Below are positions 982 through 46,277 of a stretch of 64,000 bases of DNA, in pieces; position 1 is the first letter of the stretch; every line of letters begins with the position of its first letter. The stretch comes from Laetmonice hystrix (Eukaryota), in contig OZ249444.1 in the NCBI GenBank assembly GCA_965235115.1, positions 17,236,001-17,300,000 on the forward strand, in the 5' to 3' direction. The translations under genes and the position numbers were made by a program. Below the pieces are notes generated by a model. That model was given only the letters and a program-made list of their open reading frames with translations, had not been told where the DNA came from and made no database searches.

Positions 982-3025
982 TTGATTAGCTTTGTCCTGA
1001 AATTCAACACATTAACTAAGAAACCTGCATCGAATCCCATCCTATTCCTATGAATTTTGTACTTTCTAGAATATCTTTTCGCAAAAAGTCTATATAATAA
1101 GTTCTGTTTTTCAAGCACTCAGGTTCTTTTCAATATTATTATTAAAAGCGAACTACAATAGACAATACAGGTTATGGAAAAATATCACAAAAATAGTTGG
1201 ATAACAATTTTAATATGACTTCCTAAGAAGAAATGAAGATTATTTGTGACTAATTGCTTCGAAGTTTCTTGGTCAGTATATACTTTTTAAAGTGGTGGAA
1301 AAGGTGCATGCAAACGATGTCCCTGAAAGTTAATGTATAGCCGCATGCTGACGTCCTTCATGCCAGGATATACACAGGCAAATGTCGTTTTGCTAAAGGA
1401 TTAACGTTCACTTTGCAAATGCCGTGATATAGGCCGTGATATAGGCCATGGTTCTCTGTGAAATTTTAAAAAAAGACATCAAATAATGCAATCTCGGGAC
1501 ATCTTGTGTGGAAATATGAGGGTTTCCTTTGGTTAAACTAATGCATTTTACACCCCTTTTTTTTACCAAAATGTCCTTAATATAGTAATTTTTTAAGGTG
1601 GGGGGGGGGGTTCCGGAATACTTGGAAACCTCCCTGGATACGCCACTGGGCAGGTGTGCGCGTGCTGTCGTCTCGATCGACGACCGGCCGGCCGTGATAT
1701 AGTTTCTGTGGGAGGTTATTGTAATGATCATACTGAATCATTTCCGTTCGTCATTGAGGACTCTATAACCCTGATGAAACTGATAACACCAAATTCCCAT
1801 TCCCCTTTTCCGGTCACCTTCCCTGCAGCGTTTCTGAAATGTTTGACAATATACTGGAAATCATGCCGAAAGTGGAGGCGGCGTCCCGGTACAGATATGC
1901 TCCTTGTCATACTGTATAGTAGTAGGCCTACAACTCCTGCTAATGGTGTAGATAGACCAACAAGACTCCCGGATAAGATCGCTAATGTATACCGGATATA
2001 AACGCATACATGTAGGCCTACATGTGTGAAAGCACAACCTATCCCTCTCAGGATTGCTGGTGGTGAGTGTTTAAACACTCGCCTTCCGTTTTTATTTTGG
2101 AACCTTACCTCGGAGTTCTGTTGATATTACCTTTCTGAGGAGCCCTTAAATAAAGTGGTCCGAGACACGGCGAGCTATAGTTTGTCCATGGTCCAATTCC
2201 AGCGGGAGTGTCGACGTGTCTCTGGCAGTAATTGGTTAAGTCAGCCAGGGAGGGGGGTCTGTTAACCAAGGGATGGGGAGGGGGGCTTGACGGGGTCATT
2301 GGATCTGTGACACAGCAGCATACCGCCGACGGAAGTCACTACATGAGTGAGTGCATTCCGAGACTATACTATAGTGTCAGGGGCATCTAGTGGGGGGGGG
2401 GGGGGGGCTTTTTTGGTCAGGAAATAGCGGGTTTTTTTTCCTTCTAAATTTAAAAAAATTCTGGGGAGGACTCCAGACCCCCATGGATGATATTGGTAGG
2501 CTAGGCCTAAATGCTCTGACAGGTCATGGGCATCCGGTTTCTAAGTTCTTTGGAAATGTCGGTATATGGTATACCCTATGTCTATTGTGCGAGTGTGTAA
2601 ACAGACGACAGAATATATATTATAACGCTGACCCCCTCATATCCACCCGAACCATCCCTTTTATTCCCACTCCCCTGCCCCCCCCCCCCCCCCCCGACAT
2701 GTCTCCCACACCATGTGAACCGAAACCATAAACCTTTTGATTCGGTTTCATACGAAAGGTCGGCTAGACATTACATGTAGTATAGGCCTACCCTTAATCC
2801 TCTCAGCTAATATATAGTGACATGATTTCTCTTTCTAAAATATTACATTATATTGTGTCAATCTGACGAAAAAGTTTTGTTCTGTCTATCATAGTTAAGA
2901 GGGTTAGGGGTTCTTAAAGAGGGCGAGACGATAGGTCTCTTAAAACCTGCATGATATACGAACTATCAGATCCACGTGTGACCTCGCACGAGTTACAAGC
3001 CAAGGTGTGACTATCCGGAAAGGGT

Positions 3026-3063
3026 TGGCCACCAGGGGGCGGGTAACGACATCGATGACGTCA
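3026..3063 (+). promoter_or_regulatory. Near-consensus CTCF motif plus full CRE in the divergent intergenic region
   Basis: TGGCCACCAGGGGGCGGG (3026-3043) versus CTCF consensus TGGCCACCAGGGGGCGCTA; TGACGTCA at 3056-3063. Sequence match only. Confidence 0.55.
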
Positions 3064-4281
3064 CGACAGCGGTCTCTATATCTCAGACAGTCGTCAGACA
3101 GAGAAGAATTTCTCTAGGCCTAACCCCACTGAGAGTGAATAGCGGCAGAGTCGAATTCAACGTAAGCGTGGAAATCACAACGGTAGGTTTGAAATTAAGG
3201 GGACGCAGGCCTATAGCCTACTGTTGTCTACCATTAGGCCTATGTTGATCGCGATTTGGCCGGATTTGGGTACCTATTTTAGGCCTAACTTTCAGTTTTA
3301 GAGGATGATCTCGCCATACTTCAAGTCGCCATGGATTTCGACAGCCAGTAGGCTATCCATCGGGGTAACCCAGGCCCTAACGCTAGCCCATCACACCTTA
3401 CAAGGCATGGAATGCCGGTTTCTACAGTGGATTAACAATATCCTGAACTGTGTTACTGGTAACCTGTGTTCTGTCCGGTGACCGACGAGAAACTCATGAT
3501 TACAATATTATCAGTGAAGCAGAACACCCGTTGCTTTGTTTAATTGCGGCATTCGGTCGGAACCTCGGGTTAAGGTTCTACTGCTTGGAGGGGTTGTGTG
3601 TCTGCGGGACACGCTTGAGCTGTCAGAATTAGATTAACAAAGTAGGGTCTATACTTGGCATCCAGAAGACTGCTATTTGAACGAGTTGAAAAATTATATA
3701 GGTCTATCTAGATGATCTATACATGTTATAGGCCTTCACATCAATAAACAACCTTATTAGTGGTGCCAGATATGATCATGTCACAACTGGATTATAAACA
3801 CTAATTAAACCTACAGGAAAAGTTCAAACTATCAATATAAGGGTGTTCAGCATGAACAAGCTTGTTCCTACCTACAATCCTGTGATGGTCTGATCTTTAA
3901 TAAAGAAATAACCAACTGAAATGTAGCTAGACGTTCTCCCCCTGGCTTCGTCTGCTTGTCTGCCCTACTAAAATTTGTCTTGTCCACGAATTGTAATGTG
4001 GCCGCCAGGCGGAATGAACCACGCAGATTCCCGGCCAGAGGGCCGCTATTCAAGTACCGCCGCGATTCCCCTTTTACCAGAAACTTGCCCATGATGGGAC
4101 AGATTCATTGACGATTTCAGAGAGGGTTGCAAACGATAGCCGCACACAAACTCTGTTATTTCTTAACATGCCCCTATAAGGGTGTGAAGAGAGAGAAAAA
4201 GCTGTCACCGGTAAGAGTACACAGTCAGTAGTGCAGTCGTAGTGAGTGAGTGAGTGTCCGATGAAGCCAGTGACGGCGTAA

Positions 4282-4397
4282 CGCGTGTGAAAATAGCGAA
4301 TGACCCAGACGGTATTTTTAAAAGTCGCCTTAGACACCGTTCCACTTATCGGCGCGACTTTAGACACTTCACATGGTGTTACTGGTGTTCAAAGGTA
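4282..4397 (+). repeat. Interspersed repeat fragment, copy A (copy B at 38726-38841, inverted)
   Basis: 116 bp aligning to the reverse complement of 38726-38841 at roughly 85-90% identity by eye. Confidence 0.85.
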
Positions 4398-4566
4398 CGT
4401 TAGTAAGGAACTTTGCCTGCCTCTTTAACCCATACAGATAAGTCTCCTTATAGGCCTAAATCTCCTCGATTAATGAGCTGGTGGGTAAGTATGACATGAC
4501 GTAAATGCAGTGTGAAAGGTTCATTATAATAACTACACAATTGGTCGTCTTGTGTCTGGTCTACAG

Positions 4567-7356
4567 ATGTCATCCGACATGAAGATTTATTTTTGTGGAA
4601 GTATCCGCGGAGGACGCGAGGATGCCGCTATATATCTCAAGATTGTCAACCATCTCAAGACGTACGGTCACGTGCTCAATGAGATTGTGGCCGACCAGAC
4701 GCTGACGAAAGAAGGTAGGCCCCTTATATAGTTGTATTTTTCTTTTGAAATGCACGGGCATCAGGGGTAACCCAATTACTTTGACAATGTCCCTAAAGAG
4801 AAAAGTTGTATAGTCCTCTACAGGAATCGAAGTAAGTAAACACCTTTAGGGACTGTTGGCACCACCATTATTAAAGGGGTTATAACCTGGTGCTATGAGC
4901 AGAAGCGCAGAATGGAAATTATATCCCACCAAAGCTATCGTAAAATCGCTTGTAGCCCCTACCTTCACAATGATCAGTAGGCTTTCAATGCATAGGCCTA
5001 ATCAGGATAAATCTATAGTTATTGGTATAGGCCTATATGCCTACTTTGCAAGAGAGTTGGTTAACGTTTGTTGGCATCATTCGCAGTGTAGGCCTATGGA
5101 TCTACGTTTTGCGGACTGTGGTAACTAACCGACCAGCCATGTTGCAGACCGTATGCCGCCAGATGGCGAGGTTGGCGTCCATGATCGTGACATGCTCTGG
5201 TTCCACCAATCAGACGGTAAGAAAATGCCTCGCTGTTGAAACCCCTATTTTTATTCCTTGTCATTTCTTCAAACTTACACCCACCCCTTTCCCTATTAAA
5301 ATAACGCATGATTTGAGGCGGGTTTTTTTATTTAAGTATTTAGCCCTATATACAAAGATAAATTGTCGTTTCAGTGTTGGTGGCCGAGGTGACGCAGCCG
5401 TCGCTAGGGGTCGGCTATGAGCTTGGACGCGCCTTCGAAAACAACAAACTGTCGCTCGTCCTGTTTCAGGTGGATAACGCCAGGGGGCAGAGTAAGTATG
5501 GGCATTACTGCATTCGGCCAACCTCGGGACAGATCTGCCTGGCCCTCGCACGGTCGTCGCCATGTTGGATCTTCTTTTATCATGTGACACGTGGTCAAAA
5601 TGGCAACGGCCGACACACTGACAAATTATAAGGTGAAAGACAAGCAGTGTCTGGCTTGTTTAAAAGCAGATCTCCGCTTGATACCTCTGACAAGTAGATT
5701 AGACATCAAAGAATCTATTCAGGTCTCTATAGATACTTTTTTTAGATGTTGACATTCCTATTGGCATTGTTTATCGTCAGACGGAAGTCAACGTCCGTCC
5801 CACGGACGCGTTGTCTCACTCGGAATTCCCTTGGGCATATGACGTCATTTCTTATGTTGATGCAAGCTGCATGGTAAAGTCGTATGATTTCATAAATACT
5901 GCAAAACTGAATGTGTCGCGGCTGCTAAGAACGAACGAGACTGCAAATCCTCGGATAAACAATCCCGCGTTAGGCCGAAATACTGATGATCTATGAACTA
6001 GCCTACTTTGCGCACGCGAGTTGTGATGTGCCCAAACCCGTGGAATCTACGTCATATCATTGCGGCTTGCGAGGTCCGAGACCACAACTAGCGAAGGGAC
6101 CGGAAGTTGGGCTGAGGTGTTCCGAATGGCCCATGCATGATCCTGCCCCCGGGGGTTACTAGTGTACCAGGTTTGATGTAGGCTACCCCTCCCCCCCAGG
6201 CCCGTACCGGGGGGGGGGGGGGGTCCATGGGGTTTCCGACCCCACCCCACCCCCCTTTCCCATGCTGTAAAACCATTTCCGTCAGAATTTTGATCTCCTG
6301 ATGTCAGGAGCGTTTTTTGGCCTTTCAAAATGAACAATTTTCCGGGGAAGGACTCCCGGACCCTCGCGACACATGAACGCCTTTTTGCACGCCCCCCCCC
6401 CTGCAACATTTAAAACTGACAAATGGCAAAATGACCCTAAGTAACCCTAACGTCAGGTTTATGTATAAGGTTATGGTTAGTTTCAAATGACGCTCTTGAA
6501 AGCATTGCGTGTGGACTGACCATGGAATGAAAATGTAGTAGGCTATACGTCAAGGCATACATGTATTCGTGTTTTTAACTTTCTCGTCTATTATATAAGT
6601 TCTGCCAAGATCTAAAGGTAGGCCTACAATTCGCAAATGTGTTTGCCCTCCCCCCGATCTAGGAAGGCCTAATTTCAAGAGCCCCTCGACCTTTTTAGGC
6701 CGCCACCAAAGGTGGGTGGGGGAAGCCCCCTCCGTCCCCCGGCAGCCGCGGCCATGGAGACTGGGCCCTATCCATTTTGTGCAGCAAGGGGAAATCCCTT
6801 ACTCCTGATCTGCAATGCTCCAGTTCTCGTCCGAAACGAAAGATACTGACCTGAATGTAGATGTTACTATAACTTCCTGTTCTAAGCTTTCAAGGTGACC
6901 TTGGATGTATAACAGGTTACTCAAAATCTTGAGTGTGCATGGGTTCAACTAAAACGGCAATGAAACTGCCATAGCTTGTTGACTGCGTATAGAGGCCCTA
7001 CATGGCCCTTTTGAGAGAAAGAGCGAGTTTTCTTGGTCTTCTGTGCTCTTTCTATCAGCCCTTATGTAAAAACCGAACATTGTTGGAATCGACTGTATGC
7101 AGTATAGACCTATTCTTGGTAGCCAATGAAAAAAATATCAATTAATAATCGAATACAACTCGTACAGATTAAGGGTTTACAGTTACTCGATATCCATTGT
7201 GGTGATATATAGGCCTATCCTTGTTTTACAGAATTATCGGCGATGATTCGCGGGGCTCCGTCTAACGCTGGAAAGTTCCATGTCTACGACTACACAGAAA
7301 ATAATGTCCTGCAAATAATCGACAGTTTCATGAATAATATAAAGCGAAAACAGTAA
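4567..7356 (+). CDS. DNPH1: 2'-deoxynucleoside 5'-phosphate N-hydrolase 1 (Rcl), 152 aa
   Basis: Exons 4567-4714, 5148-5216, 5375-5491, 7232-7356 (459 nt; all GT-AG, all phase 1). Motifs KIYFCGSIRGGRED, HDRDMLW, AEVTQPSLGVGYELGRA and LSAMIRG match DNPH1. An alternative ATG lies at 4579. Confidence 0.95.
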
Positions 7357-29120: not shown

Positions 29121-32075
29121 ATGGACAGATAGACACCCCTCCAGTGACTGGTGGTACTAAGGAAGGGTACTTGGCATCGTGATGGGAAGTGCCCACAAGT
29201 ACCAGTACACCTAATAGTAAAGCTCCATGACATTTCCCATTTAATATTTCTGTACTTGTTCAATAAAAGTACAATGAAAGTAGTATTACAATGATTTTAA
29301 AACAATACATACCTACTGCGAGTGGTGTAAATTGTACTGTACTATAGAAAAAATTACATTACCTTCGATGGTGTGAGTACCAAACCATGTGGTGTTGGGT
29401 GGAAGTTTTGGAGCGTGTCTTTAAAACCCTCTGGCGCATTCGTAGCGCTTGTTTATATATAAACGTTGGCGTATATGTTCATCTGGCAGTGGCCGTAAAT
29501 CTGAGAATGGAGACTCTAAAAGTGATGTAATGTAAAAAAGCCAGGTTGTAGAGCTGGATATGTAACCATTTTAATTCGGGCCAAATCGAAAGAGATGGAA
29601 GAGATTCTGTGTTTTCTTAAGTTTGGGGCCACTATGAGATAAAGTTACACACCAACGTGTTCATAAGATAAATGTTTACAATAAAGACGTATGTTGTATG
29701 TTTGGGGTTGACGGATGAATCACTACACATGTATTACAAACCCTCCGTCTTGGAGAGAGACAGGTGTTTGACAGACCTCGCAGTCGGTCTCAGTGCGGCT
29801 CAACCTGAAGGATTTCACATTCAGGGATACCACACAAACTGAAATTCCCGAAGCTTGTACACAGAGAATAATTCACAAAGTAGGAGAGCTGATGAATGAA
29901 ATCTTTTAGTCCAGGATGTAGGAAAGTTTTATCGTCAGGGGAGTACTATGGGACCATACTGAACACAAGTCCGATCATTCTTTGTGTATCTATCTTACCA
30001 CAGTGTTTCTCCTCCCTATATTTGTGTATGCGAGCCCCAAATAACACCGTTTTACACTGTGACTGTAACAAAACATCAAGTATTGCGAAATACCACTTTG
30101 ACATTTCTCGTGTTTCAATGAAACATTGATGGAAAACAGGTATGAGGGAAATTGGGCAGACATAATCTTTGGTGATCCGGTCTAAGTACTGCAGGTTAAC
30201 TGATGGAGCCAGGGAACTGCAAACTTACGTGAGATCTGGGTCTGGGTGCATTGAATCTAGTGACTACTGAGTACTTTAAATCTCCCTCACCAAACAATCA
30301 ATCCGATTTTTGTGTTTTTATTCCCAGAGCATATTTTGTGACGTAAGGGTGTAAGTATTAACTTTGGTATTGACCAATGAAACTCGGTTATTCAGTCGGC
30401 GGTGTTATACCACCGTATATGATATTAGGCTGGAGAAGTCGTGTGACGACTCAAGCCAGTCGTGAGGCCCCAGCCAGTTTGATAACATTTACCCGAGTTA
30501 CCAAGGGCAATGGGTGACATCTGTTGGGGGAGGGGGGGGGGGCAATGTTTCAAGTTCAGGACCGAGGTAAGGTATCTTAACCCTGTAGCAGCGCAGCCCA
30601 AATTTCAGAATCTAGTCACCCAAAGTAGATTTCGTACTGGCTGAGTGAAAAGGTTGGACCTCTACGTTTGATGTTGAACTAGATTATCCGGCCTGAGGGG
30701 CTCCTTCAAGTAATGTCAGTGAATTGTGTAGACATTCTGTCACAACTGATTGGACAGTTTTGCAGTATATCTCAGGCACTTGTGGTATTTGTCATGTTGG
30801 TTAGAACATGTCATTATGACAGGATTAATGAGTAATAAAACGATCCATGTCCTATATATATGTAATAGCAGTGCCTCGGAATATTATACAGCAGGAAATG
30901 TGAGAAAATAATTTATTTCACCGAGGTTAAACATGCACGAAAGAAAAATGAAGTGGAGCTTTAGTTCTAGGTTTTTAATCCATTTGATACCATCAATATT
31001 TTGAGTATTCCATACCACATTAAGTTATAACATTCGTGTTCAGTTCTGAATGTCGAGTAGTTTGATGGAGTTTGTAGAATTGTGCAGACCTCACTTAGTG
31101 GGGTGACAGATGAAGAGATCTCAGGCTTTCTGTACAGTTTGTGGTCAGTACATGTTTTCTAGCCTTCGCAGTATCGCTAAAACGCCATTTTTTGCCTTTT
31201 GATTTAGCTAGAGGTGTTCCATAGATATGTCGGGTGGCTATGTCAGTATATGTCACAATGGTTATGTTTGCCGGCTCAAGTTTTACAGGCATGTGGTTAT
31301 GTTGTCAGAGGCAAGTGTTTAGGGATTAGGAATTTAATCCGTGTTCACCGTGCCCATCCTTTGTTTATGTAAACCAGGTTTACTGTCCTGTATAACAGTC
31401 TGTGTCTGTATGTCCATTTAAAAGTTTAGTAAATCACGATTATAGCAGCCATGATCGTCGACCACAGTATTTTCTGATGTGTTGTCTGTCTGTAAATGTA
31501 GCATTCTCCCATTGAACGATCCTGATTGGCTTGGCACAGTCACCTGGTGGGTTGTGACGTCACGTGAAAGGGGGACGCCCGAGAATAAATTACAATGGTT
31601 TAATTCCGAAGCCTATTAACATCCTAATTGTCCTATGTAAGTTTATTAATACAGTCCGACCTCATTAATCAGTGCTTCTTTAATCCGTATACCTCACACT
31701 TTCTGGTACCGTAACCTCTTCTGCCATTTTCTATTAAATGATTCAGTAATCCGTATGTTTCACAATCCCAAACATTTTAATGGGCACCAAGCTGTTGGAT
31801 AAACAAGGTCTGTATTGTTTGGTCGAGCTTGTGGCTGCAAATAGGAGAAAAATGGAATATAAAATTTGAAATATAAACAAAGCTACTTGTCACAACACTA
31901 CCATAACATTGTTCATAACATTAAGGTGAGATTCTGTGTTTCTCAACTTTGTGATGTATAATTCTTGCCATGGCTTTACGTTGACTGGATTAAGATGGGT
32001 TGGGTTTAGATTGGAGAGGGGTTGAGATGGGTCCAAGGGGTTGAGATGTTAGGGGCGACTCGTACAAACCTTGGT

Positions 32076-32685
32076 CCGCTTGGTGGCAGCACTGTCGCAC
32101 CGGTCCTCACTCTAACAATGTAGCACAAGATTAAATAGGACGACGAAATACCAAGCTTTGTCCGGATGTGTTACGTTTTGTTATGGAAAATTACAGTGTG
32201 TATGAATTCCTGAACTCGTAGAACCTTTAAATGTTACGATATTTCATAATAATTACAGCTACTGGACCCTTGCAGATATTAGACCATCCAAACCAATACT
32301 AATGTGCTACAGCAGGGACCGGTACGACAGTGCTGCCCTCACGTGGATGTGTCTGGAGTGCCCTGTTGCGCATTCGTCTCAAGTCTCCCAATGAACATGA
32401 CAATAGGGGCTTGCTATATGTTTTTGGGTAGCCTATAGCCGAAATAGGGACACCACTATAATGGCTATAATGAGCCCGACAATATCATGGCCTAATGAAT
32501 GGCCTACCATGTTGAGAGCTAGTCATCAGGGATTCAGGGTGTTGGGCGGATGCAACACGACCTAATGGTAAAATGTATAGGCCTGGTAGGCAGTGCCTAC
32601 CAGGTGGCAGCACTTGGAGGGGACAGGACGTTAGCGACACCTGGCGGATCACTAGGTGGGGCCCGCCGTCCGCCAGAGGGTAGTA
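32076..32685 (+). promoter_or_regulatory. Cluster of four co-oriented CTCF-like motifs (candidate insulator)
   Basis: CCGCTTGGTGGCAGCAC 32076-32092; CTACCAGGTGGCAGCAC 32597-32613; TCACTAGGTGGGGCCC 32649-32664; CCGCCAGAGGGTAGTA 32670-32685. Motif resemblance only. Confidence 0.45.
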
Positions 32686-34715
32686 ACGTTCCGCTCAACG
32701 GGTCGCTACTGGAGCGACCAGCAGAGACCCCTATGGGCGCAGTTGGGAATAGTGGGCCATATTGGATCTCAAGTCTCCAACGCACAATTATGAAGTGTAT
32801 CAATTACAGATATATAAAGTTATCCACAGACTCACCAACCAGTAAGAATTAGATCGAAGCCAATCCCATGTTTTCGATTATCTGTTAGGCTAAGTGAACA
32901 ATGAGATAGGAATTAGGGCTCGCTGCCGCTGGGGCGTTCTCTAACGTCGTAAGTTTCGTAAAAATATGATTCATTCCAGGTTCAGCCTTAATCCTTGATG
33001 AAACCCAACGGTAAAGCTAAGCTATCTGAAACATGCAACCTTTCCTTTTTGGCTAAAGAGTTGTTACAGGTTTTAATTCTACATTGTCTGGTGGGCTGAC
33101 ACAGTGACGTCAAGGACCTGTCATTGGTGGCTTCCATGTCACGTGGGAGCATGTATCTAGATGAGTATTGGGGGAAGACGAGTAAAGAATCCAGTAGATT
33201 TAAAGACTCGTGTTCATTTAGTGAACCGTCGAGGAAGACTAACACACGATTCTTCCATTGTCTGTGCCTGTATGCTATGGCAGGGATTGAGTGTGGGACT
33301 AACGCATCGTAATACATCAAATTCAATCATGTAATACTATAAATCCACCCATTCTTCGTCCATACTATATTATAGACTCTATAGTAAACTGCCCAAGTGG
33401 TAGAAAATATCTTTCCTGAGTAAACGGCATGACATGTAAAGTAACTCTTGAAAAGCACTTGCATGCTCTAATTAATGTACGTAGCCTTCCAAGAAGAAAC
33501 TTGACATTATTTAGTTTCACGGTCTTGCAATATGTAAGCCTGTATGTATATCGTGCCTTTACTTGAGGTCATTGTTATGCCCTAATGAATGCACTGCAAT
33601 GACTGAATGTTTTGTGAGATATTTTATCCCAACTTCTGTTGTAGTGTTCTATAAGTAGATCAAATCGTCTGTATCTTATAGGCTACATTTTTACTTGCAT
33701 GCATAACCAGTGTCTTCATAATGAAATAATCCCATCAGACGTCAGTGACAGTGCATGTGTGGCCAACGTGCTATTCTTATTCGCCCATTGCTGTCACTGA
33801 GAGCGGTTCATAAGTTTTAACTACTGGTTCAAACAATAGTTAAACCATAGAAAACGATTGTAGCATGAGGCCGGCACTCAGGCTGTAGAAGAGAGAAGAG
33901 CGTGGACTTTGCTGCAGAAAAATAACACTGCAGGCCCACTTGCCTTCCCCCCCCCCCCCCCTTCAATTGCTCACAGTTGATTTCACAAAGTGTGACATGA
34001 TGTAAAGTATATGCTTGGTGAATAGATGAAGAAAATCATCCATCATGGACAAAAGTACACTCTATCTTACACTGTACTACCATACTATCTTCGACCTGGA
34101 TCTTTGAGATGCCTTGGCGATGTTAGTGTGCTGCCTAGTCCAAACGTTTTGGAGGTTATTCGTGGCTTCCTTATGTGTTACAGAATATACACCAGTGACC
34201 TGGCTCTGTTTTAGTCATTGTGGATGCAACTTGAACAACCTATATGTTACTTATCCCCATTTTCTTAAACCTTCTGATGTTATTGAATGATTTTGGGGAA
34301 TTCAACCTCAAGTACCCTGATGATGATCTTAATGTGCCGAACCTGTGGTAAATCAGAATGTCAAAATAATGAATGGATTTCTGGGCTTCTGTTGTTCAGC
34401 ATCCGATTTTAATAATTATTATGGAATTAAATTTTGGGTACGAGCGAGGGGGAGGGGTGAGCGTAACCAGATATTATTCAGGAGGCAATTATTTTGGTGT
34501 TTCCCCCCTACATCCTTCGGACCGGTACAATCTGTTTTAAATATAGTTATGGCTCAAGTCAATACTTGGCCGATCTGTCAGGCACGTAAGCATATTATTA
34601 AATCGCACGTGTAGTGTTCGGTGCACCCGGACTAGGAAGTAACACTGTGCGTTATATTCAGATAATTCGTGCTTACACTCAGTCTTTACCTGATCGTTAG
34701 TCTGGATTCTAAGGA

Positions 34716-35236
34716 ACTATGTGGGTGGATATCTGATCCTTACTATGTGGGTGGATATCTGATCCTTACTATGTGGGTCGATATCTGATCCTTACTATGT
34801 GGGTCGATATCTGATCCTTACTATGTGGGTCGATATCTGATCCTTACTATGTGGGTCGATATCTGATCCTTACTATGTGGGTCGATATCTGATCCTTACT
34901 ATGTGGGTCGATATCTGATCCTTACTATGTGGGTCGATATCTGATCCTTACTATGTGGGTCGATATCTGATCCTTACTATGTGGGTCGATATCTGATCCT
35001 TACTATGTGGGTCGATATCTGATCCTTACTATGTGGGTCGATATCTGATCCTTACTATGTGGGTCGATATCTGATCCTTACTATGTGGGTCGATATCTGA
35101 TCCTTACTATGTGGGTCGATATCTGATCCTTACTATGTGGGTCGATATCTGATCCTTACTATGTGAGTGGATATCTGATCCTTACTATGTGGGTCGATAT
35201 CTGATCCTTACTATGTGGGTCGATATCTGATCCTTA
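34716..35236. repeat. Highly homogeneous 26-bp minisatellite, ~20 copies
   Basis: Unit TATGTGGGTCGATATCTGATCCTTAC, head to tail with no spacers; only a few C/G or G/A variants. Confidence 0.97.
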
Positions 35237-37511
35237 TCCTTGAATATAAGCAGCCATGCAGGTGGGTTAATATGCAAACATGGGGAAATCTGAGTGATAT
35301 TTTCCGTTCACCGTTAGATCATAACAATGGCACGTTGACTCTAGGGACCACAGATTGTGTGTCGCCCAAAGGCCGGGGAGGGAAGCCACTATAAATATTT
35401 ATAAACGTCTGCAGTTTTTGGTCAAACTTCGCCATATCTTGGAAGATTGTAACTTAGACCCATGTTCACCAACTTGACAAAGACTGTTTTGATGGTGCAT
35501 TCAGTGTATCATATATGAATGAACAGGTTTAGGAATAAAAGATTGCAACTGTTACAGCCTGACTCTCGAGTTATCATTTTGGTATATGATGGTATATTAT
35601 GTAGGTGCTATAGTCAGAATGCTATAGTCAATGAACTCAGCTCCCTGTGAGTTTCAACGCTTACCTGAGTATATATAGGCCCATAGATTTCCAGGAAAAG
35701 TATTTCACCAAAGAACATCCAAAGGAAATTCAAGATCATTCTAGGTATCACCTCAGATCTCGAAATATGAGTTGTTTGTAATTTAGAAACCTATCTTTTT
35801 AGACCAAACGAGGACTTGTTTATGCATTCCTCCAGATAAGCATAGCGTGAACCTTAACCAGAGAATCGATGATCATCAGCATCCCGACATTACCAGTGCA
35901 GGTGATCCGATTTATCCGGTACTGGTGTAGAGTCTTTGAGAAATCTTTATTGATTTGTTGAGCCATACATGTAGACTTGTGACCCTCTTAGAGATTAATT
36001 TAAGAGTGTATTTTTGCGGTTCTTATTTTACCGATGTATAGGCCTACACGTGCTCCTCGCTCAAGCCGCATGAGCAGATCCCACTGTGCATGGCGAAAGG
36101 CCTCCGTCTGGATTATGCTCATCTCATTTATGATGGTGGATTTGATTACTGTAGCCCACCGGGCTCACGTAGAGTTTTGCACCATACGGCAGTTATGGGT
36201 TAAAGGGGCATGCTATAGAACACGTTTTTGAGGATTTCCGGCAATTATCCAACATGACTGTGTACTAGGGATCCAAGTAAATAATCCTACCACAGCATTT
36301 TGTCCCCCGACGTGTTTTCGCTGCGTATGCAGCACAAGTAGGTTCTATACGACCAAACCCATAGATTTCTCCCGATAGCACATCTCCCGCCATAATTTGG
36401 TAGACCAGTGTATTTGCATACTGCGTCACATCCTGCGTGTGCACTCTCTGCATGTGCTCAGTCACGTGCTTCGTTTAGTTGTAAACAATTCAGCAGTTGC
36501 ACTCGATCGTCTGGCATCAGAATGCCACCCAAAAAATATTTTACGAAATCGGCAGAGAAGCGGGCAAGGGAGCTTCATAAACTTTGATTTCTCACGCAAA
36601 ATAAAACTGATAAGTCTGTCTTTGTTTACCAAGCAATTTTAATGAAGGATCTCTTTATGAAAACAGCAAAAGTTCTTTGAAATACCGATTTTTCACGTTT
36701 CCTCATAATATGTCCCTTTAATGCCCATAATGGTTGCGTTATGGGACAGGTCCGGACAAAACAAATCGAAGATTTTGGCGACACCGCTAGACGGCCTCGA
36801 CATGCCGGGCTGGTGCCACTGACAGAAAGACGGCTGTCCAAGGACGCGCTGAGTGGAGTTAGAGTGACATCAATCTGGGACCCCTCGGATTACGAAAGTT
36901 GAGAAGTTAGAACCCCCTACCTGACCAGTTTTTAATTAGTAATTCTACCACGTTAGAAAGTTCTGAGATGTCCACAAAGAGCAGTGAGTAACCCGTGTAA
37001 AGTGCCGTGCTATATGAGACCGCTGTACCAGGGAAGAAACGTTGCCAGATTAAGAACTCTACTGATCTAAATCCGAATCTGAAACCGTCGACCTGGATTT
37101 GTGGCCGCACAAAGGAATCTAGAGGGGATAGATTAAGGTGTATTTATGTCTTAAGCTACAACACTGGCCATAGAGTGCATGTGCCTTAAGAATCACGGGC
37201 GCGAAGAATCAAAAGATTTTGTTTGATCGACAAGCAGGTTTTCCTATTTCCAAGTGCCTATCATAATCTTGGATCACCATGCTATGGGTGGTAGGCCTGT
37301 GAACATTGATCAATAGCAGTATCTGAAATCAATAACTTTTCTACCGTCACTTCTGGCAGTGTTAAGAGAGTAGGTCTACTCAAGGCTGTGTGATTTACGA
37401 TATAGATATCGAAGTATCAGAATGAGTCATGACCAATCATGTGAAAGGACTAGTATACACTGTCAATGGAGACGTTTTTGTCATATGAACCAGACGCTAT
37501 AATTGGATATC

Positions 37512-40500
37512 ATGTCGCGCCAATCAAAACTGGACATCCTGAGAGGGAACTGTACCGAAGATGACCTTCCGGCGCAGCACAGCCGTACCGTCAGAGTATA
37601 TCTTTCCGCAACAAAAGGTAAACTTTCGAACCAGCTGTTATCATTATATAAGTGTACGGAGTATTCTTGTATAGGAGTTGGTAGTTGGTGTAGAAGAGGT
37701 TGATATTAGAAAATTTCAAAACAAATGTCTACATGTCTAAGGTTGAATGGAAATGGGATTGAGCAGGACTGCCTTATTAAGTATTATATTTTGAGTTTTT
37801 GACATTTGCAGACATGAATGTTGAACGAGAGTCAATATTAAGAGATGTTTACCCAAAGATCAAACAACACTGCTGCGGTCGATATGGCATCGACTTTCAG
37901 GTACATCTTTTACCATTGTTTACGAAGTTTGCGATGGAATTTCATATCCGGGTTCTTACTATTGCACATTTATTCTTGTCATGTGAAAGGGCCCTGTACC
38001 TGCCCAGTTGAACTTTTATGGGAAAAAATAATGAGATATACAAGAAGTCTATCGTTTCTGTTCTCATAGTAAAGCGATAAAGATATTGTGTCAACTCTTT
38101 ATAAGTTAAGGCATTCCTGTCAGCCTCCACTATCACTGTTCTAAATAGCCCCTGTACATGTATATCGGGTGGAAAACCGTTGTTTGTTTAGTTTGTGGAT
38201 CTGCACTGGGGCGTGATAGAGTCGATAGGCCACCTGGCGGGGGACCTGGCCGTCATCAAGAGGGAGATCCAACGATGCCGCCAGAGGTCGCTCGGTCCCA
38301 GCTTCCTGGTGAGTCAAATGAACGAACAAATTAGAAAAAAAGAAACAAAGAAAAAGCATACCAAAACAATGCTATAGGCCTAAACCTGATGCTCATGTGG
38401 GCAATCCCCCTTACCCCGGGGCTGGAGCCATATGGTTAGGCCCATATCAACTCGTTCTATTCCACTCCCAGTGTCTGGTTGGTGGGTTGAACGGCCCCCC
38501 AGCCCTCCCGGACCAGATCTCGCCACACCACTACCAAATCCTGCTGGACGAACTGACACGTCGTGATGACAAGATGGCGGCCCTCATGACCACCCTCTAC
38601 GATCTGGACGAGAATAACAAACCTCCTCTGATTTCCCGGAGAAGAGTGCCGTGGGTAAGTTGGTATAGTGGCTATAAGCCTGCAGTTCTTAAACCTACAG
38701 CAAAAGTTCCTCACTAACGTAGGCCTACCTTTGAACACCAGTAACACCATATAAAGTGTCTAAGGTCACACCGATAAGTGGAACACTGTCTACGGCGACT
38801 TTTTAAAAATACCGCCCGGGTCATTCGCTATTTCCCACGCGAGACAGCGGGAGCTATATCTATTAATAGATTGAGATAATGGCCAAATAGGGTAAACAAA
38901 CCGACGAAGCCAGCGGGAGAATGTCTCTACATTTCGGTTGATTATTCCTTTATTAAAGATCAGATAATCACAGAATTGTAGGTAAGAACAACTTTGTTCA
39001 TGCTGAACACCCTTGTAGGCCTATTGATAGTTTGAACTTTTCTATTCCCTTTAATGACCAACTTCAGGTAAAACGATTGGTCACCAATAATCATGTATTA
39101 AACTAAAAGGTTATTTCTTTCTTCGTAGATCAAGTCTGACCAGTGGGAAGGATACCATGAATTTTACCAGCATTTCACTGATGCCGTCATGGCCATGCAG
39201 GAGGCGGGGAAATTTACCCACGATGACGTCACGTCCTTGATGAAATCGGGTTTGTATTGAAAGTTATCTGTGCGAAACTTTGTAAGCTTGTATTACACGA
39301 AGGAAACACAAAGTTTAAAGTGAAAGAAGTGTGTAGTGCTGTAGTGTAATGCGTTATATTCGTTTTATTCTATGACCACCACGCTACCTCATGCTGCGCC
39401 TGTTACTTGTGTAGCATTTGAAACAGAAATCTTTGCGGGGATAGAAGACACCGAAGAGGAAACAAGAAGTAAAACCCTCTGCTTCACTCGGATAATCGAG
39501 ACGACAGGTGCACATCAATATCACCAGCAGTTTGGGTTCTCTGGTGATACAAAGGTTGAAGTCAATGTCAAAGACGCTCAAAGTCGTCTGCTTACGATTC
39601 GTGATCATGACCTTCACAAATGGCTTCCCGCCGCGAACATCAAAGTTATAAAAACCGATTATCAGGTAACTGGGGCCACACTGGACTCACAACAAGAGCA
39701 ACTGCCAGAAGCTTCATTTTCCGAAAAGTCTCAGATAGTGACACAGCCACGACAAGAGGAGTACGTGGATGATTTGTGTAAGAAGGTTCTGAGTCAACTG
39801 AAGCGCCTTGTTGACCGCGCCGCAGCGCCACTAGGAATTGCTCAAAATGGAGTCACTGAGGACGCATGCGCCGAGGTTGTAGAGGTCAGTTAAGTGCTCT
39901 ACGAGTTTAACAAAACGTTTGTGAGTCTGGCTGAATAAATGAATTAGTGGAAGTAGCGTTAGTGGAATGGCTAATTAGGTCAATATCACGTCATCGGCGC
40001 CATACTTTGTTCTACGATAATAGGCCTACTATAAAGTACTTCCGACTGTATACTAAATATAAGATGTCTGGGAGATCCATTTTGCTGACATTATTACGAC
40101 TATACTTCAGTCTTGCTTTAGCTTTAATTTCTTGGTATCTTTTTTAGAAACATGCATTAACACTCCTTTTATGTTCGTGTATGACAATAAATCATCTTTA
40201 TTTTGCCACACAGCACTGGCGAAAGGCATTCTCGTTAAGGGATGCCCTAGTAGACTCCACTGCCATGGATAGCCTGCACAAATACCTAAATGGTAGGGCC
40301 TAAGTAGTTTATTGACAATGTATCAGCTTCCAAAAATCATTATTTCACGTTTAAACTTCAAACTAAAATCCCTTGTTTGTGGTGGTAAGCTTCTGGGATC
40401 CTATAGAGCCAGTTCACTTCATTATCAACTGGATCGGGGCGGACGCCATGATGACAGGTTTCCACTCCACATTCCGTTCCTTGCCCCACCTTGCCCACAG

Positions 40501-43500
40501 TTTGTCTAATGATTAGGCCTGTCTCACTCTACAGGTCCGATCAGAACCCTCTCAGTCCTCCATGGTCGATCACCTCAGACACGAGCGACCATCCTGGCCA
40601 GGTTGGCGACAAGTATGGCGGCACCCCGCGACAAGTCTTCACGAGACCCAGTCGTCGTTATTCGGTTCCTGAGTCTTTCGGACGTCTCAATGACAACGAC
40701 AGATCTTTTGTCGAGTCTAGCGCGGCAGATCTCTTTGGTTTACGGTTTTGCGTGGAAAGAGGGGGGAAATAAACAAAGCACAGCGAAGCGTTTTCTTAAG
40801 TGCATCGAGTTTGCAAAAGGGGGTTCGCCTTTGTTTATAATGATAGATGAGCTGGAGAAATTATCTCCCGATTCGTATGATCTTTCCTGGATACCTGATA
40901 CTCTGCCAGAAAACGTCAAAGTCATCTTTGGCTGCTCAAGCAAGACTCAAATATTTGAGGATCTCTGTGCCAAAACACCGTACATGGACTGCATCATAGA
41001 GATAGAGACTGAAACCTTGGAGAAAACCATTCCGGGTACTCTTGAGGTACTCCGCACCCGTCCTGACTCAGACAGAGCGTTAACAAACTCTCAATATGCT
41101 CATCTACATGCTCTGATCCACCAAGGCGACAGAACTCTTCCAGAGCACATTCTCTACGACATTGCACAGGGCTGGCGTTCGTACGACACCATTTGTATGA
41201 GTATTGATGACAGCGAGGAAGGTCAGATTCTTGCCTGGTTTGAGCACCTTGAGAACATCCATGGCTGCCTTCTGGTCTCTTCGTGCCTCCAGTACATCAC
41301 AGCTGGCAAACATGGTGTCACAGAATGTGAGCTACTTGACCTGCTCTCAATAGATGAAGAACTTCTGAACTCTGGTAAGGCAACTCTTACGTATCGTCTG
41401 ATATCGTTGTAAACTTCTAAACTGCAAATTTAAAAAAAGTGATAAATTTGTCTAATAAATCCTAATAATGGGCATAATATCAGTTGATCAATATGACATC
41501 AGGCTATGTGAGTTTTGCCATTTTTAATAAAATAGTTTGTCGATTCTGTTATTTAGGATTTTAGCGAATTCCTGTTACAATTCACTCTTACTTATAGGTG
41601 TCCTTCTCAAAGTTACACCTGGGCTTCGTCGCCTTCCAGATCTGTTGTGGGCCCGCCTGCGAGCTGACCTTGATCCCTCCCTCTTGACGCGTACTGTTGA
41701 CGATCGTGACGTAGTGTGCTGGGCCCATCAGGTGTTTCCAAAGTGTGTCCTCGCACGATATGTGGATGAGATCAATCCAATATCAAAAATCCACGCTCGA
41801 ATGGCGCAATACTTCAAGATGATTACTCCAACGTGTATCCCCTTGGATGATAGTAAAAGTAAACTGTCACATGATATGAGGTTAGATCCGCAGCCATATA
41901 CTTATGATAACAGGAATTCTGCCTACAGCCAAGTGATGTACAACAAGCGGAAAATATCAGAGTTGCCGCATCAGTTTCTTAACGCAAGACAATATGAGGA
42001 GTTGAAAAAACACATCCTTTTCAGCTATAAATGGTTAAACCACAAACTTCTTGCAACTTCGGTGGGTGCTCTTCTATCGACGTTAGAGGATTTACAAGAA
42101 GATGTCGAATTAAAGACGGATCAAGAGCTCACCGAAGTTCTCAGAGCCATACAAGATAGTGCTTCGCCCCTAGCTGTTCATCCAGGCTCTCTGAGAGCAG
42201 AGCTTACCGGGCGCCTGATGACGTCACTAGGAGACATGCCTCATGTGACGTCACTAATACGTCAGTGTGACGACGACGGTTACAAAGACTGCGTTCTGAC
42301 GCCGCTGACGTCATCGTTCGATGCGGGCGAAGAGGAGATTGTCCAGGTCGTCCAGTGTGACGTGGGCCCGGCTGGCGAGCTTCTGGTTGCATCCGCCTGG
42401 CAGACCGGCGAGCTCGTAGTCTACACTGTCCCAGAGAAAGTCAGCCTTTGGGACGAAAACTCCGGAAAGAAAAAACGGAATTTTGAGTGCAGTCAGTACA
42501 CATACTGCACAGATCTGCGTGTTTCTCAGGACGGTCGGAAGCTTCTGGCCTTCAATAACGGCCAACCAAAATATACCTTTCTCGAAGACTCTCCACTCCT
42601 CGACATCTTTGACATGGAAACGGGTCGTAAACTACATCGAATTTATTTCGGAGAAAGTGGACAGCAACCGAAAAGATTGTTCAGAGTAACAGAATTACAT
42701 GAGAGACACCTGGTGTTTGACACGCCGAACTACGTTGCCGTTTGCATTGATACGGTTCGTTTGTGTGACATCAAGACAGGCAAGGAACTATCAATGGCAC
42801 CTTGGCCTTTCCTCCTCACGCCAGACGAACGATACATCGTGATGGCAGAGCGCGATGGACATAGACTTGTCGTCAGGACCTTTCCTGAACTGAAACGAAA
42901 GAGCAGGTTATCATCACCGAAGAACATCACAGCGATTGTGGCACTAGTGACTGCCACCTCGATGAAGCTGCTGGTAGCAGCAGGTTCCGCTGGAATAATA
43001 TCGATGTACGACTTCGCCAATGTAGAGGGTGGTGCAGAGATGGTAGACCCTGAAAAGAAAGGGGTCTTAATAGAGAAAAAAGGCGATGGTCTAAAAGGCG
43101 GCTGTGGGAAACTGATTTTGTCCCCCGACAATACTCTTGTGTTTGCCATATACATATATTCAATTGGGAAGGCGCTTCATAGGACTAACTTCGTTATGTC
43201 TGCACAATACTTGGAGCATCTTCATATTTATAGAAGCGACCTGTCAGACATCGTGCAGTTTTCACCTGACAGTAAATACATTCTTCATTTGAAGGTAGCC
43301 GTTGGAGAATTTGATGTCATTGACTCAAAGTCGGGAATGAAAAAGGCTACATACGGGCAGGAGCAAAGGATACAACAGATGAGTTTCGGTAAGGATCCCA
43401 ATAAACTCTTCGTTACATCGCGGGAAGGCCTTGTCGCTTTAGACATAGAACTCCTCATTAAGCGAGGTAGACTTCCCGATGTTCCGCCCGAGTGTGACAC

Positions 43501-45094
43501 CGACACTGAGTCGGTTTCGGTGGAACTCAATACCCCGCCAAGGAAACTTCGGACGATTTTGGCAGACGTAGAATGGACAGATGTGATGAGGTTAAATGAT
43601 GTTGAGTCAGTCCCGTTGAACCTTACTCAGTTGGACGAGCAGACTGGTCTGGTGTCTGCCAGCAGAGTCAGTCTAACCCGTGGCGTCCACTTCCCCAATT
43701 CGGATCTCCTACCGTATCTCTGTGACGTCATTCTTACTGCAGACGGGAGTCGTCTGCTGCTCGTGTTTGATCAGCTGCATGTCATGACGGCGCAATCAGG
43801 GAGCAAGGATTGGAAAACAGTGGCAGGGCCTCTGAATGACCACTTCACCCACACAAAGGTCATGGGAGCAAGCATCGGTACGGCACCGGGTCGCCGGGGT
43901 AGCGTCTTTGGCGTGTCTGCCACTGCCATAGACCAGGGTGGAACGTCACTGCGGAAAGGGGAAACGATTTACGGCAACAGTGTGGTCCGTCGAGGGACCA
44001 TGTTTACAGCGGAGGGAGGGGAAACCGTTCAAAGAATTCCCAGTACCATACGGGTATTTAGTGCCACGAACGGAGACTGCGTTCAGAAGATTTCCATCAG
44101 GAATGAAAGGATTGTGACCTGCACAGAACACTTCATCGTCACAGCCACCTTGGGGGGAGACTTCACCAACGTCTACAGCATTTCGTCGGCAACATGCATC
44201 TGTACACTCCAGTGCAGGCCGGTAAATGCAACATTTTCACCGGGTGAAGCGTTTCTTATACTGATACCTGAAAAGAACCCAAGTGAAATTCATATTTATT
44301 CGGGTCCAACGTATCTGGATATGCGAAGATGTCGCCTTGCGCATGGAGACCTAGTTGCCTGGGAGATGATCACGTGCTCCCAGTCTCCAGGCACTGTTCT
44401 TGTCTCCACGTCTGGAGAGGGTCGGTATCGGCTCGGCCGTGACCCTGGGGTCACGTACATCTGGGTTGATTTACCGGATGCGACGGTTACCAACGAATTC
44501 ACGTGTAACTCGGAGCTGGTCCATGTGCTTCCAGATGGTACCCGAGGAGTGGATACGGACTTTGACTTCTATGACCTGACCACCGGCAACGTGTTGTTCA
44601 GAGTTCAAGTGAACGATGACTTGACGCTGATGGAACATGCGTCTTTTGTGACCAATGATGGCAAAATGGTCGTTTTCCTGGACAATAATGTAGGCACGAT
44701 CAATGTTGTAGACATTGAAAAGAAAAAGGTAATCTGCCAATGCTTTTATCATGCATCAAGGCCCAATGTGGATGGTGTTCGTGGTCACCGCGAGGTGGCG
44801 TCACTGCTGCCGATAAATGGCGGCTACCAGATGGCGATAGTGGAGGGGCCCACCGTCAAACAATTTGCAATCCAAACTGCCAGCACCAAGTTGACGGCTA
44901 CGGGTTTCAGTAAGCTATATAAAACAGCATACCGGGATGCCAAATCAAGGGCGGAATATTTCCACGTTGTAAATACAAATGAGACCACACCAATAATTCG
45001 ACTTGCACGGAGGAAAAAAAGAATGTTCCGTACCAAACTGATTCATCCCCTATGTGGCAGAAAGAAAAAATATAGTTTATCGACCCGGGTATAG
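37512..45094 (+). CDS. NWD1/NWD2-family STAND protein: DUF4062-like N-terminus, NACHT-like NTPase with degenerate Walker A, helical region and divergent WD40-like propellers; 1833 aa
   Basis: Exons 37512-37617, 37812-37900, 38192-38308, 38472-38654, 39129-39249, 39415-39884, 40214-40292, 40535-41374, 41598-45094 (5502 nt, in frame). NWD-type motifs RTVRVYLS..GDM.VER, YP.IK..C...YGIDFQFVDLHWGV, PLFIMIDELEKL, LSWIPDTLPENVKVIF, LQYITAGKHGVTECELLDLLSIDE, YNKRKISELP and PGSLRAELTGRL. Confidence 0.9.
38726..38841 (-). repeat. Interspersed repeat fragment, copy B (in NWD intron 4)
   Basis: Its reverse complement aligns with 4282-4397. Confidence 0.85.
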
Positions 45095-45690
45095 ATGTAC
45101 TTCAAAAATACACCACTATTCCAGGGGTGCGTTTCACAACCATCGTTATCCTGTCGAAAATACATTGGTGTACCGATACAAGCTAACGACAGGTTGTGAA
45201 ACGCACCTCAGTATCGTTAACCTCATGGAGACTATAAGCAATCTTCTGAAATCTGGTTAGTATAAAACGTTCCACAAGACATTGCGACAAAACATTTTTT
45301 TAGATTTTAATTCGATCCAGACGGCATGTAGGCCTAGTATCCCAGAGGATGAAGAATTATTGATCAGTAATATCAGTGGATTATAAACTTTCTTACGAAG
45401 TACCAGACAGCGAGTGTCATATGGGTCACTTTTTCTATAAATGTACAATTGCCCTGAATGGGTCGATTAAGTGCCCCTTATAAAGTTAATAAAGAAAGGT
45501 TATTAATCGTACATGTCTGAAACGAATAGCGCATCACATAGGCCTCTTTCATTCCCAGATTTAGCCCCAATCACATCACCCTATGATCTGCCACGACTAT
45601 TTCTTTATGCTAGTTTTCCTCTAGATGGCGCGCCCAACGGGGCCTTGCGAGAGGACAGGTGTGGCAGTAATCCAAGTCCCCCTAAAACGA

Positions 45691-45810
45691 CGGACCTGCA
45701 TGCTATCCTTGAAGTAGCCTATAAGTCCGACGAACCTGCATGCTATCCTTGAAGTAGCCTATAAGTCCGACGGACCTGCATGCTATCCTTGAAATAGCCT
45801 ATAAGTCCGA
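45691..45810. repeat. 40-bp tandem repeat, 3 copies
   Basis: CGGACCTGCATGCTATCCTTGAAGTAGCCTATAAGTCCGA x3; copies 2 and 3 each carry one substitution. Confidence 0.95.
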
Positions 45811-45925
45811 CGCACATGTGCATTCACCCACTCGGCGCTACCTCGACAGATGGCAGATCATGTCTCGGCCGTAACGGTCAGGTCGCCAGTTTTGAAATTA
45901 GTAACACAACAAAACAAACCCATGT

Positions 45926-46277
45926 CATAGGCGTAGGAACCGGGGGGGCAGGGGGGCGTCAGCCCCCCTAATATCAAAAGTGGGGGGGGCTGGAGTGTGT
46001 TTCAGCCCCCCCCCCCCAACATTTGGGTGATTTCTTAATCGAGGTGGGTTTCATGCCGGTTTTCTATGTAGGCCTATCACGCATAAAAATGATGGAATTT
46101 TGTTGATAGATTTGAGAGATTTTTGCTCCGAGATGCTCAGAAAACGCATCTCCGGCATTCCTAAAAAAAATTCTGGGGGAGGGCCCCCAGACCCCCCTCC
46201 AGGGCCCGCTTCGGTGGCCATGGATTATCCCTCCAATCTTCAGCCCCCCCAACCAAAAAGAGCTTCCTACGCCTATG
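45926..46277. mobile_element. MITE, 352 bp, 13-bp TIR, apparent 5-bp TSD
   Basis: CATAGGCGTAGGA / TCCTACGCCTATG; CATGT on both flanks (45921-45925, 46278-46282); internal G/C runs. Confidence 0.8.

Follow-up and report, generated by a model that had tools for sequence, protein, structure and literature searches.

The window analysed here, a stretch of 64,000 nucleotides from Laetmonice hystrix (contig OZ249444.1, positions 17,236,001 to 17,300,000 of the forward strand), contains on its plus strand a gene of nine exons, the predicted product of which is identified by sequence comparison as an NWD1/NWD2-type STAND protein with a DUF4062/TIR-like domain at its N-terminus, followed by a NACHT-type nucleotide-binding domain (NBD), an NWD1-type winged helix, and, at the C-terminus, predicted beta-propellers. 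The Walker A motif (P-loop) of its NBD, for which the consensus is GxxGxGK[ST], is degenerate and reads GRSPQTRA (40564..40587 of the window; residues 399-406 of the protein), as judged from homologue alignment and DNA contigs. Comparison with an orthologue places the loss of the motif in a common ancestor of this and at least one other species. The exon model, which was built by homologue-guided tblastn and by reading of the junctions, with splice sites inferred from the DNA, has a predicted coding sequence of 5502 nt (1833 codons) with a sole, terminal stop, and all eight introns are of the GT-AG type. It bears out a preliminary description of the window, made from the sequence alone, which had proposed an intact multi-exon reading frame of approximately 5.5 kb with the motif in exon 8. 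That description had also remarked that a mechanical list of open reading frames (ORFs) hides the P-loop, and indeed the ORF called at this place begins only at the TTG at 40603.

The N-terminal part of the protein is encoded by six short exons. Exon 1 (37512..37617) contains the ATG and the first DUF4062/TIR-like strand (RVYLSATK), ends at a GT donor, and aligns with the N-termini of full-length NWD homologues. Exon 2 (37812..37900), which is bordered by AG/GT sites, encodes part of DUF4062 (DMNVERESIL...GIDFQ) and was located by tblastn at 46-49% identity with P0014, P0016, and P0059, homologues that themselves match Pfam DUF4062. A further part of the domain (FVDLHWGV...) is assigned by homologue alignment to exon 3 (38192..38308), and the end of its core lies in exon 4 (38472..38654), where the family motif RYGW reads LNGP; exon 5 (39129..39249) again has AG/GT sites and the frame runs on through it. 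Exon 6 (39415..39884) starts with AFETEI, in which the Glu encoded at 39426-39428 corresponds in alignment to E1008, the catalytic residue of the TIR-like domain of TEP1. Exon 7 (40214..40292) encodes a linker ahead of the NBD (HWRKAF...KYLN-G), whose counterpart in the orthologue is the exon LQHWRMV...KYLK. Exon 8 (40535..41374), with its acceptor AG at 40533-40534, encodes the NACHT-type NBD and the start of the NWD1-type winged helix, and exon 9 (41598..45094), which runs for 1165 codons to the stop and is the best conserved stretch between the orthologues, supplies the remainder of the winged helix, then a helical linker and the predicted C-terminal beta-propellers.

At the start of exon 8, positions 40549-40602 translate as LSVLH-GRSPQTRA-TILARLA, with the T, R, and A codons at 40579-40587. 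In a MAFFT alignment with 159 homologues, GRSPQTRA falls without gaps on the Walker A motif of NWD proteins, so that codons and alignment both agree with the assignment made in the preliminary description. Of the 142 homologues that cover this motif, 133 carry the canonical [GA]-x4-GK[ST]; the nine non-canonical entries are the present protein, its orthologue, a paralogue in the same genome (L014, GTADTNKS), P0055 (GKAGAGAT), P0132 (GEPGSGSP), and four others that look truncated or mis-modelled. Three of the four conserved Walker A residues are gone here (G13P, G15T, and K16R), while G10 is retained. Other near-invariant positions of the NBD are changed as well, namely G46S, by which RFLG becomes RFLS (40663-40674) as had been noted earlier, and D107E and Q108K, by which the DSLDQL of the family becomes DELEKL in the Walker B region PLFIMIDELEKL (40828..40863). 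The Walker B Asp of the sequence FIMIDE, described before as intact, is present at 40846-40848; 158 of 158 homologues have this residue (D104), and the near-invariant residues R43, Q64, W118, P120, R180, Q186, W213, S215, and G260 are likewise retained. The NBD is divergent overall, with only 17 of the 27 columns that are conserved at ≥80% being retained, and the loss of three of four P-loop residues is statistically inseparable from this general divergence of the domain.

The preliminary description had called for the bases of the motif to be checked. Contigs from three DNA runs, all of one sample, span 40482-40678 and match GRSPQTRA, the nearest contig differences being located at 40517 and 40752; no assembly error is involved. 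An alternative exon supplying a canonical GKT, which the same description had raised as an objection to its own proposal, is excluded as far as the sequence tells, because a six-frame scan of 30000-46000 found no [GA]-x4-GK[ST] and no GK[ST] in an open context occurs on the plus strand of 37000-45200.

An exhaustive phmmer search with the exon 8 product returned 1878 homologues at E≤0.001, and the closest named homologues, from Octopus, Ptychodera, Branchiostoma, and Antedon, are annotated as NWD1-like or NWD2. Pfam HTH_NWD1 (PF25469) is matched above threshold in this product (41.7-44.2 bits against a cut-off of 27; E=1.3e-10) and scores 35.2 bits in the orthologue. The canonical homologue P0014 matches Pfam DUF4062, AAA_16, NACHT, HTH_NWD1, and, strongly, WD40, and the present protein aligns to every one of these domain regions; unlike P0014, however, it gives no match to Pfam NACHT, AAA_16, or WD40. 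Exons 1-6, being short, give no Pfam match by themselves, and the C-terminal region gives sub-threshold propeller matches only (THOC3, 36 bits). The winged helix is the sole region that passes a Pfam threshold, and the protein is therefore regarded as a strongly diverged NWD. In the orthologue, the C-terminal region passes the threshold of Beta-prop_NWD2_C (34.7 against a cut-off of 33).

To our knowledge, no NWD structure has been solved. An AlphaFold2 model of the exon 8 product (97-sequence alignment; predicted local distance difference test score, 88.5) places the first strand at residues 6-10 of the exon piece and begins the next helix at Pro13, and GRSPQTRA therefore occupies the exact site of the P-loop. 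As modeled, the product has the P-loop nucleoside triphosphatase (NTPase)/initiator-STAND fold, in which a three-layer alpha/beta domain is followed by helical and winged-helix domains. Foldseek matches of the model include ORC/Cdc6, the wheat resistosome (9h2l), and Avs3 (8dgc), with E values of 1e-5 to 1e-4, and a PDB sequence search with a profile of the NBD gave weak matches to Cdc6, ORC4, and NLRC4 only.

Of the 48 near-invariant positions in the DUF4062 region of the homologues, to which the product of exons 1-6 aligns, 31 are retained. DUF4062 has a TIR-like NADase fold, and that of TEP1 is active, with E1008 as the catalytic residue (bioRxiv 10.64898/2026.05.01.722283). When NWD N-termini are aligned as a profile to PDB 11gz_A, the Glu that is invariant in SATEQEI falls on position 115 of the chain, located in the sequence SVTEMEV, and this position corresponds to E1008 because the offset is set by R908. 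This Glu is retained in both orthologues (SAFETEI here, 39417-39428 in exon 6; AFEKEV in the other species, locus L020 at approximately 2345-2370), while Phe stands in both for the Thr that is invariant in SATEQEI. Further near-invariant residues of the domain are altered in the present protein, where SSTF is changed to SATK, DLRWG to DLHWG, and RYGW to LNGP. NADase activity was not found in purified human NWD1 and NWD2 (10.64898/2026.05.01.722283), and such activity is therefore quite uncertain here; the effector-like DUF4062 domain is present but atypical.

The orthologue is located on locus L020 of another species, where a 1184-aa C-terminal exon (P0001) lies directly downstream of an NBD exon (P0005). 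P0001 is 49-50% identical to exon 9 of the present gene over 99% of the length of P0001. In reciprocal searches against the L. hystrix genome, P0001 scored 1262 bits against 87 for the next hit, and P0005 72.6 against approximately 32; because of this wide margin, the two genes are considered to be single-copy reciprocal-best orthologues. A FastTree analysis also grouped them, with a support of 90, but the grouping is flagged as a meeting of long branches, and orthology was therefore taken from the reciprocal best hits. The P-loop of the orthologue reads GSDPTLRS. The changes G13P and K16R are common to both proteins, the Gly preceding the Lys is replaced by Leu there and by Thr here, and the splice phase into the NBD exon is identical; K16R, the Walker B Asp D104, and R43, a residue that does not vary in alignment A1, are found in both. 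Since G13P and K16R are shared, the loss of the P-loop predates the split of the two species. No further orthologue emerged from a search that used residues 1-133 of exon 8, which returned nothing, or from a profile built on both C-terminal exons, which retrieved P0001 only. In the orthologue (L020, 9230-9650), an acidic low-complexity insert of approximately 90 residues replaces the helical region after the NBD, which normally bears the family-conserved motifs R-x-LT-x2-Q and W-x-SY.

Synonymous differences between the orthologues are saturated, with the proportion of differing synonymous sites (pS) being 0.82-0.83, and pS was therefore compared directly with the proportion of differing non-synonymous sites (pN), in place of omega, for these two species. 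The C-terminal exon has a pN of 0.33 and the NBD exon one of 0.48. The saturation of pS, together with the difference in G+C content between the two genes (46% and 39%), points to a deep split of the species, and because pN is far from saturation, both the C-terminal and the NBD parts must have been under purifying selection, which rules out a long-dead pseudogene. The orthologue, moreover, keeps its exon of 1184 codons open. The earlier argument that the motif was not lost through pseudogene decay thus holds, and is strengthened by the same loss in the orthologue.

The two parts of the protein have evolved at different rates. Identity between the orthologues is 32.5% in the NBD against 48.5% in the C-terminal part, whereas the controls, 22 pairs of NWD proteins with intact P-loops (C-terminal identity ≥33%), show the reverse: their NBD identity is the higher by a median of 11 points, and in no pair is it more than 1.5 points the lower. 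The NBD has therefore become the faster-evolving part of the present protein. The end branches of the two orthologues in the tree are 1.12 and 2.76, against a median of 0.53. A fast NBD would be the expected pattern if the nucleotide cycle had been abandoned and the domain kept mainly as structure. Among the alleles of the sequenced sample, there is one coding indel, of 3 bases, and the indels in introns are of 10, 5, and 1 bases. The haplotypes also show a cluster of non-synonymous single-nucleotide polymorphisms at 43608-44154 and an in-frame CAT insertion at 43817, in the C-terminal exon, and this variable stretch may be a loop between propellers.

Within the L. hystrix genome, a canonical Walker A is present in the DNA taken for 12 of 18 NWD paralogue loci, examples being GIEGAGKT, GASGSGKT, GVSGCGKT, GESGHGKT, and GASGMGKT. 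The nearest in-genome relatives, located on other chromosomes, share only approximately 30% identity with the present protein, canonical NWDs of any origin likewise reach only approximately 30%, and no head-to-head NWD pair occurs within the window. The gene is a single-copy, old lineage. The preliminary description had regarded it as a pseudo-ATPase NWD paralogue: the assignment to the NWD STAND proteins, the degenerate Walker A, and the constraint on the gene all stand, but a recent origin from an active NWD does not. A second in-genome paralogue with a degenerate motif, L014 (G000:C3, approximately 10,584,062-10,584,787, minus strand), retains the K-S of Walker A in GTADTNKS and has lost two glycines, and its surrounding frame is open for >950 aa.

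These observations are best accommodated by a model in which the protein is an NWD-family pseudo-NTPase that has been conserved and works via its propellers and winged helix, the NBD being no longer a nucleoside triphosphate (NTP) switch, and we consider this reading reasonably probable. The second and third glycines of Walker A and its Lys were lost in an ancestor of the two species. A side chain at the Gly preceding the Lys, together with the absence of the Lys itself, would be incompatible with canonical phosphate binding, because of which the NBD is most likely not an NTP-driven switch. Cycling between ADP and ATP would have ended and the NBD would survive as a structural module, leaving a constitutive, nucleotide-independent scaffold or adaptor that works through the well-conserved propellers and winged helix. 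It is also tempting to speculate that a lineage-specific NWD clade in annelid-like invertebrates dispensed at an early date with switching by nucleotide and has persisted as a scaffold based on its propellers, with a TIR-like DUF4062 domain and its catalytic Glu, a broader proposal that we advance only tentatively and regard as rather doubtful.

Several points weigh against the pseudo-NTPase model. Since the whole protein is divergent, the loss of the P-loop may be one facet of a broader functional change. The P-loop could be read in a single orthologue only (n=1). In a third, closer species, the match is a 147-aa fragment only (P0004, ENA ERZ26222911; 52% identity), in which the ORF begins at approximately residue 130 of exon 8 and no long ORF is called within 7 kb downstream; this could reflect either a different intron structure or gene decay in that species. 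None of the runs found to contain the 7.8-kb gene stretch (three runs, one sample) is on record as RNA, and the allelic pN/pS of this one sample is 0.54 (8 synonymous and 14 non-synonymous differences), which is not significantly below 1. Finally, the Arg at the Lys position, together with the kept Walker B Asp and R43, could provide a residual contact with nucleotide or phosphate.

This last point leads to the main rival view, in which the NBD would still bind nucleotide via a non-canonical loop but hydrolyse it poorly, and so act as a slow or locked switch. Lys-to-Arg mutants of Walker A retain some binding in many P-loop NTPases, and K16R, D104, and R43 are indeed present in both orthologues. 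However, the Gly preceding the Lys is replaced by Thr here and by Leu in the orthologue, while the middle Gly is Pro in both, and these positions normally need the backbone geometry of Gly; in addition, the 8-mers are identical at only 3 of 8 positions, no better than the NBD as a whole, and the rate of the NBD is relaxed. On balance, a locked switch is unlikely, although the residues concerned keep it worth considering. The roles of sensor, decoy, or dominant-negative partner suggested in the preliminary description found no support, and it is less easy still to regard the protein as a decoy or dominant-negative partner that would co-assemble with P-loop-intact NWD paralogues and modulate their oligomerisation. 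At least 12 such paralogues with a canonical Walker A exist in the genome, and the P-loop-independent immune function of plant helper NLRs offers a precedent among NLRs (PMC7747998), but a close or neighbouring partner is lacking, with even the most similar paralogues being approximately 30% identical and on other chromosomes, and no head-to-head pair lies in the window; this role appears improbable.

The absence of an RNA run, the allelic pN/pS not significantly below 1, and the third species with perhaps fragments only would all suit a silent or recently disabled relic, in which loss of the P-loop in this species is without consequence. Yet 1833 codons are free of internal stops and joined across eight GT-AG introns, the sole allelic indel in coding sequence is 3 bases long, whereas those in introns are of 10, 5, and 1 bases, and over the long term pN is well under pS and the large exon of the orthologue has stayed open, all of which makes a relic quite improbable. 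An artefact, in which an assembly error or a wrong gene model would hide a canonical P-loop, found no supporting evidence and can practically be set aside: the contigs of the three runs agree across the motif, no Walker A is encoded in 30000-46000, and strand, loop, and helix lie in one frame of one exon, with the same structure and splice phase in the orthologue. The pseudo-NTPase model is thus the one retained here.

A comparable case is found in Sir3, the AAA+ domain of which is a pseudo-ATPase of the ORC/Cdc6 clade and serves as a scaffold without binding nucleotide. Sir3 (3te6) and ORC subunits are among the Foldseek matches of the exon 8 model, with template modeling scores of approximately 0.3-0.5. 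The initiator-clade/STAND NTPase fold is kept in both proteins, and the likeness is at the level of the fold only, the family, partners, and function being different. In plants, the helper NLRs ADR1, ADR1-L2, and NRG1a/b function independently of the P-loop (PMC7747998), which resembles the model proposed here, by analogy only, in that a STAND protein would work without the need of an intact P-loop. By contrast, the plant proteins belong to the NB-ARC clade and have mostly intact P-loops that mutation has revealed to be dispensable, whereas in the present protein the motif has been lost naturally.

Among animal proteins, NWD1 and NWD2 have the same order of domains as the present protein (DUF4062/TIR-like, NACHT-type NBD, NWD1-type winged helix, and, as predicted for the present protein, beta-propellers), from which it differs in its degenerate Walker A and in leaving Pfam NACHT, AAA_16, and WD40 unmatched. 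QUI-1 of Caenorhabditis elegans, the reported orthologue of NWD1, is reported to conserve most of its Walker A (PMC8871372), and literature searches brought up no NWD protein described as having a degenerate Walker A. The N-terminal domain is homologous to that of the TEP1/DUF4062 NADase family and keeps the Glu aligned to E1008, but several near-invariant residues are changed, including the Thr of SATEQEI, which is replaced by Phe. NWD1 and NWD2 are among the oldest STAND proteins of animals and their functions are poorly understood (PMC4852459; PMC8871372), and the TIR-like N-terminal domain of NWD proteins is presumed to be activated by oligomerisation of NACHT (10.64898/2026.05.01.722283). 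With a naturally P-loop-dead NWD that is under selection, a system is at hand in which the NWD functions that depend on the nucleotide cycle can be told from those that do not; it also indicates that loss of the P-loop, best documented in plant NLRs, also occurs and persists in animal NWD proteins. Were the broader proposal of a scaffold clade true, it would represent a natural experiment in which an animal NWD-type STAND dispenses with ATP turnover and may regulate NWD/TIR-like signalling in a constitutive or partner-gated manner. Unless a function or a partner comes to light, the impact on the field would be limited.

Directly past the stop codon of exon 9, positions 45121-45156 consist of a short repeat of very high copy number, at which the summed contig depth reaches approximately 2900-4600, compared with approximately 50 elsewhere, and at which many contigs end or diverge.

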